From Adineta vaga (Eukaryota; Animalia; Rotifera), in NCBI GenBank assembly GCA_021613535.1, contig CP075492.1, forward strand, positions 13,578,001 to 13,642,000: a DNA stretch of 64,000 nt, written 5' to 3'. A program made the translations under genes and the position numbers. Below the pieces are notes generated by a model. That model was given only the letters and a program-made list of their open reading frames with translations, had not been told where the DNA came from and did no database searches. The stretch's first letter is position 1. Each line of letters begins with the position of its first letter. Positions 4,801 through 47,341 of this stretch are shown here, in pieces.

Positions 4801-5433
4801 TTAAAATAAAAGATTTGGAATAACAAGAAGAATCTTACTTCGTGCCTTTTCGACTGATATATTAGCAGCTGTAGCAAACATTCGTGTAACAAATGATTGA
4901 CAATTCATTTTACCTCCAACAGCAATAAAGAGTCGATATTCACGATCTTCAAATGATTTAGCATAAATCCTCAATTGTTCGGCATCAAAATCAGGTAATT
5001 CTTTTTGAATCAAAAACCATGTATATTCTTTACAATCTCTCTCATAAAACGCATTTTTTTCTGTTTTTGAGCTGATACGAATTTTAATATTATGATCTTT
5101 ATCGACACCTAATTGATAAATAATTCCATTTATCTGAATACACCAATGAAATCCATCAATGCCAGGACTAATATTGAGAGCAAGTGGTTGATTGAAAAGA
5201 GCTCGTCTTCCAATCCAAGCACCTTCTTCAAGACTATGAGTTGCATTTTGTATACCATGCACTAAATTCTTGGGTATTCTCAATGGATTTAAGTCTGCCA
5301 AATCAAATTCAATCGAATGTTTTGCTTCAGATTTATCACCTTTAGCTGCGTAAACAACGCCTCGTACAGCTCCATATGCATGACCTACAACAGGGACAGC
5401 TTTGATTATATTAAATGCTTTTCTTTCTGCCAT
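4801..5433 (-). CDS. Permuted papain-like (PPPDE/LRAT/NlpC-P60-type) Cys hydrolase-like protein
   Basis: FHWCIQI..YQL (His) precedes Y......NCQSF (Cys), the permuted order. Intronless, 210 aa. Confidence 0.65.
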   Translation of the reverse strand: MAERKAFNIIKAVPVVGHAYGAVRGVVYAAKGDKSEAKHSIEFDLADLNPLRIPKNLVHGIQNATHSLEEGAWIGRRALFNQPLALNISPGIDGFHWCIQINGIIYQLGVDKDHNIKIRISSKTEKNAFYERDCKEYTWFLIQKELPDFDAEQLRIYAKSFEDREYRLFIAVGGKMNCQSFVTRMFATAANISVEKARSKILLVIPNLLF

Positions 5434-5762
5434 GTGATTGTTTTCTCCTTCTTGATTTAAAAGACCTAACAGCTATAGAAATCTTTCGGAAGAACACAAG
5501 AGCTTTCACTTTATCAACACTCCTGATATGAATATAGACAGAGAAAAAAAACTAATGTGTCAAAGAAAGAGAATACAGAGCAAACAGATAATGACATGAT
5601 ACATTTCGAAAGTGTATGTATATGGATAGTCGATATTGATCTCCGTTATACTTTCATCCGATTTTCTCACATAATAGATATTGTGCTTTAATTTAAAACT
5701 TATCAAGAAAGCAATTATAGAATCACGATACATAATAATACATATGAAAGTTAAAGTCGATG

Positions 5763-42611: not shown

Positions 42612-43827
42612 ATGACGCTTGAAGTCGTTCCTGAAGATGGTAACTTAAAATTTTATGGTAAGAGAAAAATTCTTGAAATTGAAATTGTAAAAGCATAATT
42701 CATCCGTAATGATCTATTTTAAGGCCCATTCAATGTAGTTTCGATAACGAAAATAACTTTATTCAATAAGGGCAATGATCGTCTTATTTTTAAGATAAAA
42801 ACAACAGCACCGAAACGTTATTGTGTTAAACCAAATACAGGATTTCTTGACCCAAACACGAGCACCACTGTTCAAAGTATGCCTATATTTTCTTTTTCAA
42901 CCATTAAATGTTTCGTCTAGTTATCCTGCAGCCAGCACGCCCTAATAATCAAAATAATGAATTTGTTAATCATAAATTTATGTTGCAATGGTCTGTGGTA
43001 CCTAGAGATTATGACGGTGATGAAAATAGTTTTGTAAGTAAATATGTTATTGTATGATATGTTATTTCTCTGTTTCTATTCATTAGTGGGAACAATATAT
43101 ATCAAAATCCCATTGTATACAGGATAAAGATGCGTTGTGTTTTTGTTGATGGTCGCTTGGAAAATAAAGAAGTAAATATCTGATTCCGACATATTTTATT
43201 CAATGACAGGAAATATTTTCTGTTTTTACGTTTTAGACTCAAACTGATGCACATCAAGAAACTCCAGTGTTAACAACAAAAATAGATTTTCTTGATTCTG
43301 ACCGTGTAGTTGACGGTCCACCTGAACCAGAACTTTTATGTTCAATTTGTCAGAATGTTTTATGGAAACCTGTTGCTTGTATAACCTGTGAAAATGCTTT
43401 TTGTTCAAAATGTATTCACATGTGGATTGAACGGTTAGATGTGAGTTGTCAAACAACTTGTCCTTTCAAATGTAATTTCAACAAAAAACGAGCACCACCT
43501 ATTCTCAACAGCCTTCTATCCAAACTTAAGATTTATTGTGTGTATCGCGACAATGGTTGTCAACAAATACTCAACTATGACGTTTTAGAGAATCATCAAC
43601 AAACTTGTGACTATAAAGATATAGTGTGTCCTGTTTGTCAGATGTGTATAACAAAACAGGACCCTACCAATACTGTACATGACATTCGTCAGTGTTTCGC
43701 TGGTATAAAAAATACACAAACTGTTGGTCAGATCCAAGCACAATTGACTATGCTATTGGATATTATTGATCACCAAAAGAAACACATTCAGACTCTTGAA
43801 AATCGACTCAATAGCTCAACAGAATAA
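42612..43827 (+). CDS. VAP-type MSP domain fused to RING/TRAF zinc finger (5 exons; one apparent frameshift near 43128)
   Basis: Exons give FKIKTTAPKRYCVKPNTG, HKFMLQ and KMRCVF. The last acceptor (~43237) splices in frame into the RING CSIC..C..CENAFC..C..CPFKC. Confidence 0.8.
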
Positions 43828-44040
43828 ACTGTATTTTTGAAATCTTCTCTTTTTGTATTTTGCGAAATTCTTATATTTTATTTAAGAAAAACAAACAAGT
43901 ACATGATGACAGATCATATTTGCTGCTTAGTCTATGTGTCATAAATTTTGTTCCAAAATATATATCTAAAGACGACGAGGACAAATTACTCCACTAGAAT
44001 AGCTAATATTGAATTTATTTGATTTTTAATCGTTAGATGA

Positions 44041-44773
44041 TATTTGAAAATTTCACACATAGGTAATAGGCCAGATCTCATGGCGATAAAAGCTCATAAG
44101 GGAAAAACTGAAGCTATTGTAGCAGCAGCGGGCGTGAAAGTACCTTTTGGTAAAGTACTTCATCGCAAGGAGATGTACCAACGATTTCACCGCCATGAAT
44201 TGTGAAACCTGCTAGTACTGATAATTCTTTAGAAGTATTTCTAGTCAAAGATGTCGGTAATTATGATGCAGCATTGAATTAGAAAGCATTTGAACATGGA
44301 GATGAAGTTATTGTCGAAATATCTATTAAACCTGGTCGAGAAGTTCGATGCAGCATTATTGTCAGAAATGAACAAATGATTGGTTTACTACTTGAAGAAT
44401 ATCTATAGTTGATCATAATAAAAGACCCATTCGTACCTATGCTGAAAAGTTTCCAATTGTAGATAACGATGATAAACTTCATGGTTAGACGACAAGTGAT
44501 ATTAAAACATATTGGATCACGGATTCTAATGATCCAATCACTGAAAAAGTTCAGGAAACAGCATAGAAATGTCATATGGTTTTAGGTTGTCGTCACTATA
44601 TTATGCATGATATTCGTATTGATCCTCAAGGAGAACCATGGTTTTTGGAAGCCGGTTTATATTGTTCTTTTGGATACGGAAGTGGTATTCCTCATATTGT
44701 AAAAGCAGCTGGAATAACTTTAGATGAATTATTCGCTATGATGGTTAAAGAAGCTTTGAAGTCTACTGAATGA
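44041..44773 (+). pseudogene. mysD-like: MysD-like D-Ala-D-Ala ligase family (mycosporine-like amino acid synthesis), 5'-truncated and disrupted
   Basis: IGNRPDLMAI.AHK..AIVAAAGVKVP, VKPASTDNSL, GREVRC, EEYL, PIRTYA and DPITEKVQE.A.KCH.LGCRHY..RIDPQGEPWFLEAGLYCSF. Several stops and frameshifts. Confidence 0.85.
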
Positions 44774-44863
44774 TTTTTTTTTCCTATTTTTTTTTCAAAT
44801 AAAAACCTCTCCTACAACTACGATTAATTTTAGCTCTAATAGATATATTATTTATCATTTTAG

Positions 44864-45657
44864 ATGACTCATGTCGATGTATCTGATTTCTTATCAAGTC
44901 TAAAATCTATCAATATTTATGATCGATTGAAAATTCTCGGTTTGAAAACCACCGATCTACAATCCAAATGTAAAACGAATATTAATCTCAGGTGGAGGGT
45001 TGGCAAAAGCATTAGAATTAGCTCGTTTATTATACGGGGCTGGTCGTTGCATTTACTGCTCATTGATTTTCTCGTTAAAGAAGCATTATCACCATTCAAT
45101 TCTGAAACTGTTCAAGACAGCCTAGAAAATACACAGATGTTGAGTGACAAGTATCTATTTGCCGATCGAATTCATTCATTAGGTTTGACAACGCCGAAAA
45201 CATACAAAATCATAAATCCTCAACAAGTTCTTGATTTCGACTTTTCTAAAGAACGTTCTCAATTCATTCTGAAAAGTATTTTAGGCAATAATATAACACG
45301 ATGGGATCTACTTAAATTGCCTTGCCAAACTCGACAACAAAAAATGCTTATGTTAATAGTTTAACAATTAATGAACATTTTCCATGGATTCTATAAGAAT
45401 GTATTCCCGATAAAGAATATTGTACATACAGACTATTTATAATGAAGAAGTAAGATTATATACTTGTTGTCAATCATCGTTTGATTTCATTGAGAGCAAC
45501 GAAAATGGTCGACCGTATGCAACTGCTCGTGAAATCTATTGAAAGTGAAATCAATTAAAGATTTATATTGTCAACTAAGTATATTTGTTCGTGGCGAAGA
45601 AGGAATCTGTTCTGTTGAAGATCCACTTCCCTTTCTTCTACATCATACAATCCCTTT
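44864..45657 (+). pseudogene. mysC-like: MysC-like ATP-grasp ligase (mycosporine-glycine synthase), internally deleted and disrupted
   Basis: ILISGG..KALELAR, TQMLSDKY.FA..LGL..PK..I.PQQV.DFDFS..ILKSI..R.DL.KLPC, PWIL*E.IP.KEYCT, CCQSS, FDFIE, DPLPFL.HH.IP. Confidence 0.82.
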
Positions 45658-45721
45658 AACAAAACAATTTAAATCTTCAAATAGTTTATTCTCTTCTCTC
45701 TTTCATATGTAACTTATTGTT

Positions 45722-47341
45722 TTACATGATAACAGTAGTGTTCGTCATTCGAAACATTCCTTGAATCCATTGAGCTTCTTTAGCACTGAAATCATTGTTT
45801 CGAATATCGACTATCTTCAAATCTTCGATCACATACATAGTATCCGGTAATGTCGTCAATGCATTGTTCGATAGATAAAAATTATTCAAACTATTGATCT
45901 TTGACAACGAAGCACTGGACATCGATGCAATTCGGTTGTTCTTAAATGATAATAATGAACAATTACGAGCAGTAATCGTCTCCAAACTACTAAGCGATGC
46001 GAGTTGATTACCATCGAATTCAATCGTGTGCAGATTAGGAATGTTTGCAGGAAGATGGTCGATGGTGCAATTCGAAGCTCGTAGTATGTTGAGTGATGTT
46101 GATCCAACAAGAGTGTCCACTGATGATAGACGAGGATTGTTTTGAAGAGATAATGATGTGAGAGATGGTAAACGACTGACAGTCCAAGGAAGACTAGTCA
46201 GTAGATTTTGATCGAGTGTCAATTGAGTGAGTGACGTCAGTTTACTGACATCGTCGGAAAGTGCTTCCAAACCACAGTTTACAATTGATAGAGTTGATAA
46301 ATGATTCAAATTGAATAATTCAGATGAAAATGGAGTTGATCGAGAGATATTTGATAAGAACAAGGATGTAAGCGAAGAAGAAAGACGACTGATCTCATCA
46401 GGAATGGTCACTGTCGGTGAATTAAGAATAGAAAGTTCTTGTAAACCATCGAGACAGAAAATAGCAGATGGAAGAGTTGGCACATTGACCAAAGTCAATC
46501 CACTGACACGACTATTTCTATCAACAATAGCATAGCTGGAAGTGGGCGGTGATGGTTGCTTTCCAGGTGGATTGATAGTAACACGAAATGGTAATGATTG
46601 GATAATTTGTTTATCCGATGTGTAGGTGGTTCCATCAATCGTACAATTCTGTTGTGGTGGTGTCTCTAGAAATAGAAAGAATTACAGACGAGATTAGATG
46701 AGATGAGATGAGAAGATTGAGCAAAAGTTATTTTACTTCGACAACCGTTCCAGCAAGCACATTTATTTTTTAAGGTAAATCGATAGTAATTTAGTGGGCC
46801 TTCTCCCAAGGCGTCCAATTCATTTGTTTCTTCATCAGTTGTACAAATCAATGAAATCGAGGCTATTTTGTTTTCATATAAATATGAGACAGTAGGATAA
46901 TCATCATTAGAACCTGTATTCCATTTGGCACTATCTTGTTTACCAAGAATGAAGGAAAACTGTTTGTCTTTGGTTGCTAAATAAAACACATACGAAATTG
47001 AACATGGTTACATAAAATAATGTACCTTGACAGACAGCAACATCGCTACAAACATCTCCTTCAGAAAATGGTTTACATGGATTGTAACTATAGACTATAA
47101 TTGCAAATCGTAATGAAGAAAAACTTCGGAGATCAGTGATGTTAAAAATCAACATACTGTAATTTGATCCAGCCGCCGGTGAAACATCTGGATATGCAGG
47201 CTTCCCATCTAGTCCCGATAACGAAGTTAGATCAATAATACCTTTTGAACTTTCAAATCGACACGGATCATCCGCAACAGCAAATACGAACAAAAGAGTG
47301 AAAAAACTTGCGAAATTCAGTATCGAAGACATCATCATCAT
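45722..47341 (-). CDS. Secreted MRH (M6P-receptor/ATG27-like) domain + LRR protein, copy 1 (4 exons)
   Basis: Signal peptide; IDLTSL, YSYNPC, VAVCQ, ISLIC and Y.F.L...CAC (MRH); LxxLxLxxN repeats. Introns near 47095-47157, 46977-47025 and 46666-46735. Confidence 0.85.

Follow-up and report, generated by a model that had tools for sequence, protein, structure and literature searches.

A decayed mysD-mysC gene pair of cyanobacterial type in the genome of the rotifer Adineta vaga

Introduction

In cyanobacteria, mycosporine-like amino acids, or MAAs, come from a short route in which MysA and MysB together yield 4-deoxygadusol, MysC converts this to mycosporine-glycine, and MysD leads on to shinorine or porphyra-334. 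Among animals, cnidarians (sea anemone, corals) have MAA genes, which are thought to have been horizontally transferred, and vertebrates have a gadusol pathway; a 2015 study by Osborn et al. reportedly dealt with these animal sunscreen pathways. Animals are generally held to obtain their MAAs from food. A canonical D-Ala-D-Ala ligase (Ddl) of bdelloid rotifers is a classic example of horizontal gene transfer (HGT) into this group. Here we describe two adjacent gene remnants, psi-mysD and psi-mysC, in a 64-kb stretch of the Adineta vaga assembly (contig 3, positions 13578001-13642000; hereafter the window, in whose positions coordinates are given unless another contig is named). The pair is very probably a non-functional, decayed duplicate of a mysD-mysC module, belonging to an MAA pathway of cyanobacterial type that Adineta acquired horizontally.

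In the literature, rotifers are named only as zooplankton containing MAAs (PMC10384724, PMC12559811), and Osborn et al. 2015 is among the references of PMC7826186. The searchable literature, whose coverage leaves out subscription journals, had no report of bdelloid MAA genes, and none is given in a study (PMC11258130) of biosynthetic genes that bdelloids gained by horizontal transfer. The window locus resembles the mysABCD cluster of Nostoc punctiforme type, here represented by L018 from Nostoc sp. C052 and L020 from Fortiea contorta, in having both ligase families and in the adjacency of mysC and mysD, and its surviving pieces are 54-68% (MysD) and 46-57% (MysC) identical to their cyanobacterial counterparts.

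Results

Two broken ligase genes

The region was read in its three forward frames, and the stop-free pieces were searched one by one against Pfam and NCBIfam. When intact relatives were compared with the whole window by tblastn, matches were confined to the spot occupied by psi-mysD and psi-mysC, and the scores were far beyond chance. The intact MysD from A. vaga contig 5 (AvMysD) aligned in three frames, at 53-66% identity, with 44044-44767 (E 4e-68), the MysD of an intact tandem on contig L041 (discussed later) matched psi-mysD at 66-70% identity (E 1.7e-83), and MysC relatives matched 44946-45664 in five pieces, with E values down to 7e-35 and identities of at most 70%. Frame reading and tblastn thus bear out a preliminary description of this DNA, made from the sequence alone, which had proposed two adjacent degraded genes on the same strand. 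The limits it gave (44041-45657) place the pair correctly, but they end about 55 bases short, and its start for psi-mysC left out the N-terminal remnant at 44864-44945.

The first gene, psi-mysD, is a pseudogene of MysD, the D-Ala-D-Ala-ligase-like ATP-grasp mycosporine ligase. It spans residues ~107-346 of its intact relatives; the 5' third (residues 1 to ~106) is gone and was unrecognisable upstream of 44044, where global DNA alignment returned only gap-ridden noise. The read path runs through frame 1 (44044-44165), frame 3 (44166-44403), and frame 2 (44405-44770), and the DNA alignment places the two frameshifts at 2-nucleotide (nt) insertions after 44165 and 44403. Four in-frame stops, a TGA at 44196 and TAGs at 44280, 44486, and 44564, complete the damage, and between them the truncation, frameshifts, and stops leave no open reading frame able to yield active MysD.

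The second gene, psi-mysC, derives from the ATP-grasp ligase MysC (NF005315/PRK06849) and survives as an N-terminal remnant (44864-44945), a Rossmann-like start (44946-45064), a central block (45065-45340), and further short blocks at 45346-45429, 45471-45521, and 45533-45709. These blocks were delimited by tblastn, as the large deletions made global DNA alignment unusable. The N-terminal remnant was recognised by a local score of 41, which exceeded 300 of 300 shuffles (mean 21, standard deviation 3.6). Four deletions have removed the N-terminal hydrophobic helix and stretches of ~48, ~35, and ~50 residues, the ~48-residue loss lying after the first Rossmann-like block, so that about one third of MysC is gone, with the conserved helix and portions of the ATP-grasp core among the losses. 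With these internal deletions, at least five frame changes (frame order 2-3-2-1-3-2), and an in-frame TAA at 45394, no complete MysC open reading frame remains. Splicing could restore neither gene, in keeping with the preliminary description, in which both copies looked dead.

Intact MysC proteins, cyanobacterial and rotifer alike (L018 6469-7866, L020 6567-7958, L011 6118-7434, L010 865-2226, L041 5359-6777), carry a strongly hydrophobic N-terminal segment before the ATP-grasp body. The 19-residue Kyte-Doolittle mean of this segment is 2.4-2.6, which suggests a membrane anchor.

Neither mysA nor mysB left a trace within the window when Nostoc and A. steineri mysA and mysB were used as queries in tblastn and tblastx, as the preliminary description had also noted. 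The DHQS-like cyclase and O-methyltransferase of a complete MAA cluster are thus missing at this locus.

Assignment to MysD and MysC

Pfam returned only sub-threshold matches for the stop-free window pieces, those of psi-mysD matching PF07478 weakly, while NCBIfam assigned the psi-mysD pieces to models of D-Ala-D-Ala-ligase type (best E 4.8e-9). A PF07478-type C-terminal domain that scores under the cut-offs of true Ddl/Van ligases is a trait of MysD: the intact MysD proteins of A. vaga and Nostoc reach 99-109 bits on Ddl models, the cut-offs of which are at least 243. By BLASTP, the best-preserved, C-terminal piece of psi-mysD is 59% identical to the MysD of Nostoc sp. C052 (E 2e-29), and the same piece gave no alignment with the canonical Ddl of A. 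vaga. Psi-mysD departs from canonical Ddl in scoring under the family cut-offs, in lacking the Ddl N-terminal domain, and in failing to align with A. vaga Ddl.

A protein search with the intact A. vaga MysD found a 100% match, the hypothetical protein I4U23_023127 [Adineta vaga], then proteins of A. ricciae and A. steineri at 64-77% identity, and then about 90 Nostocales proteins at 63-67%. In both Nostocales relatives checked, Nostoc sp. C052 and Fortiea contorta, the MysD relative is the fourth gene in a row of DHQS-like, Methyltransf_3, ATP-grasp (463-465 amino acids), and Ddl-like genes, which is the canonical mysABCD layout. Rotifer MysD proteins bear the public names “hypothetical protein”, “unnamed protein product”, and “ATP-grasp domain-containing protein”; the D-Ala-D-Ala ligase label is found only among automatic Joint Genome Institute (JGI) names and cyanobacterial orthologues. 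The earlier proposal that some bdelloid genes annotated as Ddl are MAA enzymes is thus right only in part, and a separate canonical Ddl does exist.

For psi-mysC, a 98-residue piece matched NF005315 with 55 bits (E 6e-15) and a second piece with E 1e-3. The model NF005315 (PRK06849.1) is labelled only “hypothetical protein”, an annotation gap. Because the third gene of the Nostoc C052 mysABCD cluster, included as a control, passes with 550 bits where 406 are required, NF005315 is in effect a MysC model. Intact rotifer MysC proteins score 341-348 bits, under that cut-off, and by these scores are divergent members of the family. A search with MysC returned a rotifer group at 57-77% identity and then cyanobacteria at 46-53%, and the central piece of psi-mysC aligned with Nostoc MysC at 47% identity (E 2e-24). 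Orthology to the third mys-cluster gene (46-57% identity with Nostoc C052 MysC) is accompanied by linkage to other mys genes: psi-mysC adjoins psi-mysD, and in A. steineri as well as on contig 4 its paralogues stand beside mysA and mysB. A sequence search of the PDB led from MysD to true Ddl/Van ligases only and from MysC to nothing, and no solved MysC or MysD was found there. Best hits and trees (below) both place the pair with MysD and MysC and not with cell-wall Ddl, as first proposed.

Relatives in A. steineri and in probable other rotifers

Trees were built by a quick maximum-likelihood method, with the pseudogenes entered as conceptual translations carrying an X at each break. In the MysD tree (58 rows), the named Adineta sequences, psi-mysD, and a number of unlabelled sequences form one 29-row clade with a support of 100 in the Shimodaira-Hasegawa-like approximate likelihood ratio test (SH-aLRT). 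This clade is nested among Nostocales sequences, with enclosing nodes at 97-99, and canonical Ddl is set off by a branch of ~10 changes per column. Within the clade, psi-mysD belongs to a subclade with A. steineri P0024, L041, and L042, and the intact copy of A. vaga belongs to another. In the MysC tree, psi-mysC groups with the MysC of L041, L042, and A. steineri P0128 in a clade of 12 rows (SH-aLRT 99), and the rotifer MysC clade is sister to the sampled cyanobacteria, not nested among them; the contig 4 copy entered this tree as exon 2 alone, and its placement, on a long branch, is unreliable. The end branches of psi-mysD (0.43, against a median of 0.13) and psi-mysC (0.53) are three to four times the tree median.

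The order of the window pair, mysD and then mysC, is that of the intact tandems on L041 and L042, in which the two genes lie on the same strand ~240-260 bp apart (in L041 the spacer is 237 bp, against 90 bp in the window). Sequences of L041/L042 type also give the highest identities to the window pseudogenes, 68-72%; psi-mysD is 57-61% identical to Nostocales MysD and 59% to the A. vaga contig 5 paralogue, and the window copy shows 55-59% identity to the intact A. vaga copies and sits in a different subclade from each. Those clade members that lack organism labels are eukaryotic and probably from other rotifers, because A. vaga has homologues, 61-67% identical, of genes that flank the intact tandem contigs and because cohesin-type genes accompany another unlabelled clade member on its 2-Mb contig.

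L042 and a further sequence, L052, come from an environmental long-read assembly (ENA assembly ERZ26165376), in which eukaryotic contigs of up to 2 Mb carry rotifer-type mysD and mysC; the GC (guanine plus cytosine) content of L042 is ~48%. These contigs suggest that the pathway extends beyond the named Adineta species. In A. steineri (GCA_905250035.1), mysD and mysC share a strand with a mysA-mysB model, all within 7.5 kb (L043, 8001-15427), and a separate row holds mysA-mysB-mysC (L047). The L043 model, of 676 amino acids with DHQS and O-methyltransferase domains, represents a genuine fusion of mysA and mysB or else two genes merged in calling.

Intact mys genes elsewhere in A. vaga

Genome-wide searches covered the 100.8-Mb assembly in six contigs; spliced gene models (mysA, mysB, and mysC on contig 4, mysC on contig 1) were searched exon by exon, with the exons unjoined. 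The preliminary description had supposed that intact copies might exist elsewhere, perhaps with mysA and mysB, and intact homologues of mysA, mysB, mysC, and mysD are indeed present in the A. vaga assembly (Table 1). These loci are found at 11.549-11.555 Mb of contig 4, 4.320-4.324 Mb of contig 5, 13.724 Mb of contig 3, and 2.836 Mb of contig 1. The contig 4 mysA, the only DHQS-like gene in the assembly, has two exons and is 56% identical to Nostoc MysA; its neighbours are mysB, an O-methyltransferase gene (PF01596, E 2e-28), and a two-exon gene of MysC type.

A third MysD-like copy is present on contig 5 (L013 4762-5802, ~4.1798-4.1808 Mb), and its A. ricciae sister, P0023, is intact. The A. 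vaga copy has two 1-nt frameshifts, one near 5288 and the other ~268 nt away, at 5556; between them it runs in a different frame, the main frame there being interrupted by stops. This copy is probably a pseudogene of recent origin, or else the result of an indel in the assembly, and not a remodelled specificity region. The canonical Ddl gene is also on contig 3, at 13762311 (L022, 13760811-13764314), ~120 kb past the window end. It encodes 365 amino acids with both Ddl domains (142 bits on PF07478) and stands back to back with an open reading frame bearing an alanine racemase N-terminal domain; this pair is of bacterial cell-wall type and separate from the Mys genes.

Table 1. Features of the window locus and intact mys genes elsewhere in the A. 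vaga assembly
Feature	Location	Strand	Evidence or remarks
psi-mysD	window, 44044..44773	+	tblastn, DNA alignment, PF07478 and NCBIfam Ddl-type partial matches, Nostoc MysD identity, tree
Spacer psi-mysD/psi-mysC	window, 44774..44863	+	90 bp, AT-rich
psi-mysC	window, 44864..45712	+	NF005315, tblastn, N-terminal alignment, helix comparison, tree
Sina/RING zinc-finger gene (neighbour)	window, 43267-43827		Pfam
LRR gene (neighbour)	window, 45722-46498	-	Pfam
MysC-type gene, 453 amino acids	contig 5, L010 865-2226	-	intact, head-to-head with MysD-type gene
MysD-type gene, 346 amino acids	contig 5, L010 2891-3931	+	intact, head-to-head with MysC-type gene
Solitary MysC-type gene, 438 amino acids	contig 3, L011 6118-7434		intact, 82 kb past window end
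MysC-type gene, two exons	contig 1		intron-bearing
mysA-mysB-mysC cluster	contig 4		with introns

Integrity of the assembly and transcription

The dead pair sits in AT-rich DNA of host-like composition and is flanked by ordinary animal genes, a Sina/RING zinc-finger gene on one side and an LRR gene on the other, in the interior of a 20-Mb contig. The GC content is 0.355 for psi-mysD and 0.324 for psi-mysC, within the range of the flanks (0.29-0.39), as against 0.42-0.44 for the Nostoc genes. In sequencing runs from at least four studies that share one organism label, 0.6-0.74 of the words of the stretch are present, and 1.9-kb DNA contigs from two studies, of 2013 and 2021, run unbroken over 43250-45036, crossing from the RING gene into psi-mysD and psi-mysC with a depth equal to that of the flanks. 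Their differences from the assembly are of single letters, plus one 1-nt insertion at 43989, outside the genes, and none of the listed differences falls at a stop codon. As these independent DNA contigs join the pair to a neighbouring animal gene, the pair is not a contaminant, nor does it answer to the chimeric segment that the preliminary description had named as grounds for withdrawing its proposal.

In the DNA contigs of both runs, an extra base relative to the assembly follows 43989 (A) and 45431 (T), and ~12-16 single-base differences occur per 1.8 kb; these reflect either allelic variation or small assembly errors.

RNA-type runs of A. vaga contain only 0.00-0.01 of the words of the stretch, and one such run, when aligned to it, gave no contig. 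These values fit silence of the locus, although they do not prove it.

Discussion

The reading that the locus is a decayed mysD-mysC duplicate of a horizontally acquired pathway was weighed against four others, of which two dispute that the genes are dead or belong here. The frame changes could be short introns or sites of recoding in living genes with a functional product, and mys genes on contigs 4 and 1 do indeed have short introns. The changes at 44165 and 44403 are 2-nt insertions, however, which leave no room for an intron, and the five stops are of three kinds (TGA, TAG, TAA) and lie inside well-aligned codons; with ~106 N-terminal residues of MysD and about one third of MysC gone, end branches of three to four times the median, and next to nothing of the stretch in RNA-type runs, we give very little credence to living genes. 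That the pair stems from cyanobacterial contamination or a chimeric join in the assembly might be thought from its closest bacterial relatives, the Nostocales, which share habitats with Adineta. Its GC content (0.32-0.36) is nevertheless that of the rotifer surroundings and not that of Nostoc genes, its closest relatives are eukaryotic and not bacterial sequences, and its position inside a 20-Mb contig is reproduced in the bridging contigs of 2013 and 2021 and in the word content of runs from at least four studies; the chance of such an artefact is accordingly close to nil.

The other two alternatives accept dead genes and dispute their descent. The first gene could be a remnant of canonical cell-wall Ddl, beside an unrelated ATP-grasp gene and with no link to MAAs, a view encouraged by the Pfam and NCBIfam results, which offer only Ddl-type models for the psi-mysD pieces, and by the canonical gene with both Ddl domains ~120 kb downstream on the same contig. 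Alignment favours Nostoc MysD over canonical Ddl by 59% identity to none at all, rotifer and Nostoc MysD fall under every Ddl cut-off, canonical Ddl lies ~10 changes per column away in the tree, and the neighbouring gene fits the MysC model; canonical Ddl, contradicted on each of these counts, is a very improbable source. We also consider it quite unlikely that the pair is a separate mysD-mysC fragment, dead on arrival, that came directly from a bacterium and not from the resident rotifer family. The lack of synteny with other rotifer mys loci would suit such an origin, as would the fact that psi-mysD is about as close to Nostocales MysD (57-61%) as to the contig 5 paralogue (59%). Against it, both genes fall within eukaryotic, rotifer-type clades (SH-aLRT 100 and 99), their top identities (68-72%) are to sequences of eukaryotic tandems, and these nearest tandems run mysD then mysC, the reverse of the cyanobacterial order (mysC then mysD).

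Several observations weigh against decay of a resident duplicate as we describe it. Three of the closest relatives (P0012, P0136, L041) lack organism labels, and the 61-67% homologues of their neighbours suggest, but do not prove, a rotifer source. The flanks of the window locus showed no synteny with the intact loci L041, L043, and L047, only noise; positional orthology with the intact tandems is for that reason unsupported, and the pair may have arisen as a dispersed duplicate and need not mark the ancestral site. The trees come from a quick method, with a very long outgroup branch. The absence of RNA is judged from assembled contigs and guessed library types, and a run with another organism label (run B), guessed to be RNA, yielded four short contigs of depth 2-3.5 on the region. 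Three of these four match near-perfectly, at 44612-44972, 45654-45725, and 46139-46373, and one more poorly; they could represent trace DNA, a mislabelled sample, or faint transcription.

The preliminary description had proposed that this lineage gained a linked MAA pathway by HGT, and the trees, the mysABCD relatives, and the intact paralogues all support it. An ancestor of Adineta may have acquired a cluster of mysABCD type from a Nostocales-like cyanobacterium, its ligase genes may then have multiplied into several modules, and the mysD-mysC module considered here would have decayed in the A. vaga lineage, its relatives retaining their own. The Nostocales-like donor is suggested mainly by MysD, because the rotifer MysC clade is only sister to the sampled cyanobacteria. 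On the cyanobacterial pattern, intact MysA (a DHQS-like cyclase) and MysB (an O-methyltransferase) would together make 4-deoxygadusol, to which MysC would add glycine in an ATP-dependent step, giving mycosporine-glycine; with MysD, addition of serine or threonine as the second amino acid would lead to shinorine or porphyra-334. The window copy supplies no enzyme to this route. Orthology and clustering suggest that the intact A. vaga enzymes may make MAAs. A wider proposal, plausible but held with somewhat less than even confidence, is that Adineta makes its own MAAs through a Nostocales-derived pathway, with several mysC/mysD modules that differ in amino-acid specificity and are gained and lost between species. 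If so, the dead tandem would record the loss of one module, the MAA profile of A. vaga would be narrower than, or different from, that of A. steineri, and the pathway would have a role in tolerance of ultraviolet light and desiccation.

Of no use as enzymes, psi-mysD and psi-mysC are an unambiguous marker, and it was this marker that led to the full intact mysA-D set in A. vaga and to the related clusters of A. steineri. With intact mysA, mysB, mysC, and mysD in hand, it becomes directly testable whether an animal that tolerates desiccation and radiation makes sunscreens de novo. In desert Nostoc, MAAs act as osmoprotectants in desiccation tolerance (PMC13131328), which offers a plausible selective reason for an MAA pathway in rotifers. 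Because the ligase module has been duplicated and lost inside the animal lineage, the transfer would be old and the family dynamic, and the dead locus stands as a record of gene-family turnover.

Among known systems, the intact mys loci of Adineta (A. vaga contigs 3, 4, and 5; A. steineri L043 and L047) belong to the same families and rotifer-type clades as the window pair; they differ in having open frames, some with spliceosomal introns, whereas the window copy is broken and of a different subclade. The canonical bdelloid Ddl (contig 3, L022) shares with psi-mysD the ATP-grasp superfamily, a Pfam C-terminal domain, and bacterial origin, but it has a Ddl N-terminal domain and an alanine-racemase-like neighbour where the window MysD has mysC. 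Cnidarian MAA and vertebrate gadusol pathways are alike in being animal-encoded and in using a DHQS-like cyclase and a methyltransferase; the vertebrate pathway is not known to include ATP-grasp ligases, and rotifer MysD is nested in Nostocales sequences. The cyanobacterial mysABCD clusters share with the intact rotifer copies even the hydrophobic helix at the N terminus of MysC. From these clusters the window locus is distinguished by its place in an animal genome, its host-like base composition, a mysD that lies upstream of mysC, the lack of mysA and mysB beside the pair, and the death of both genes.

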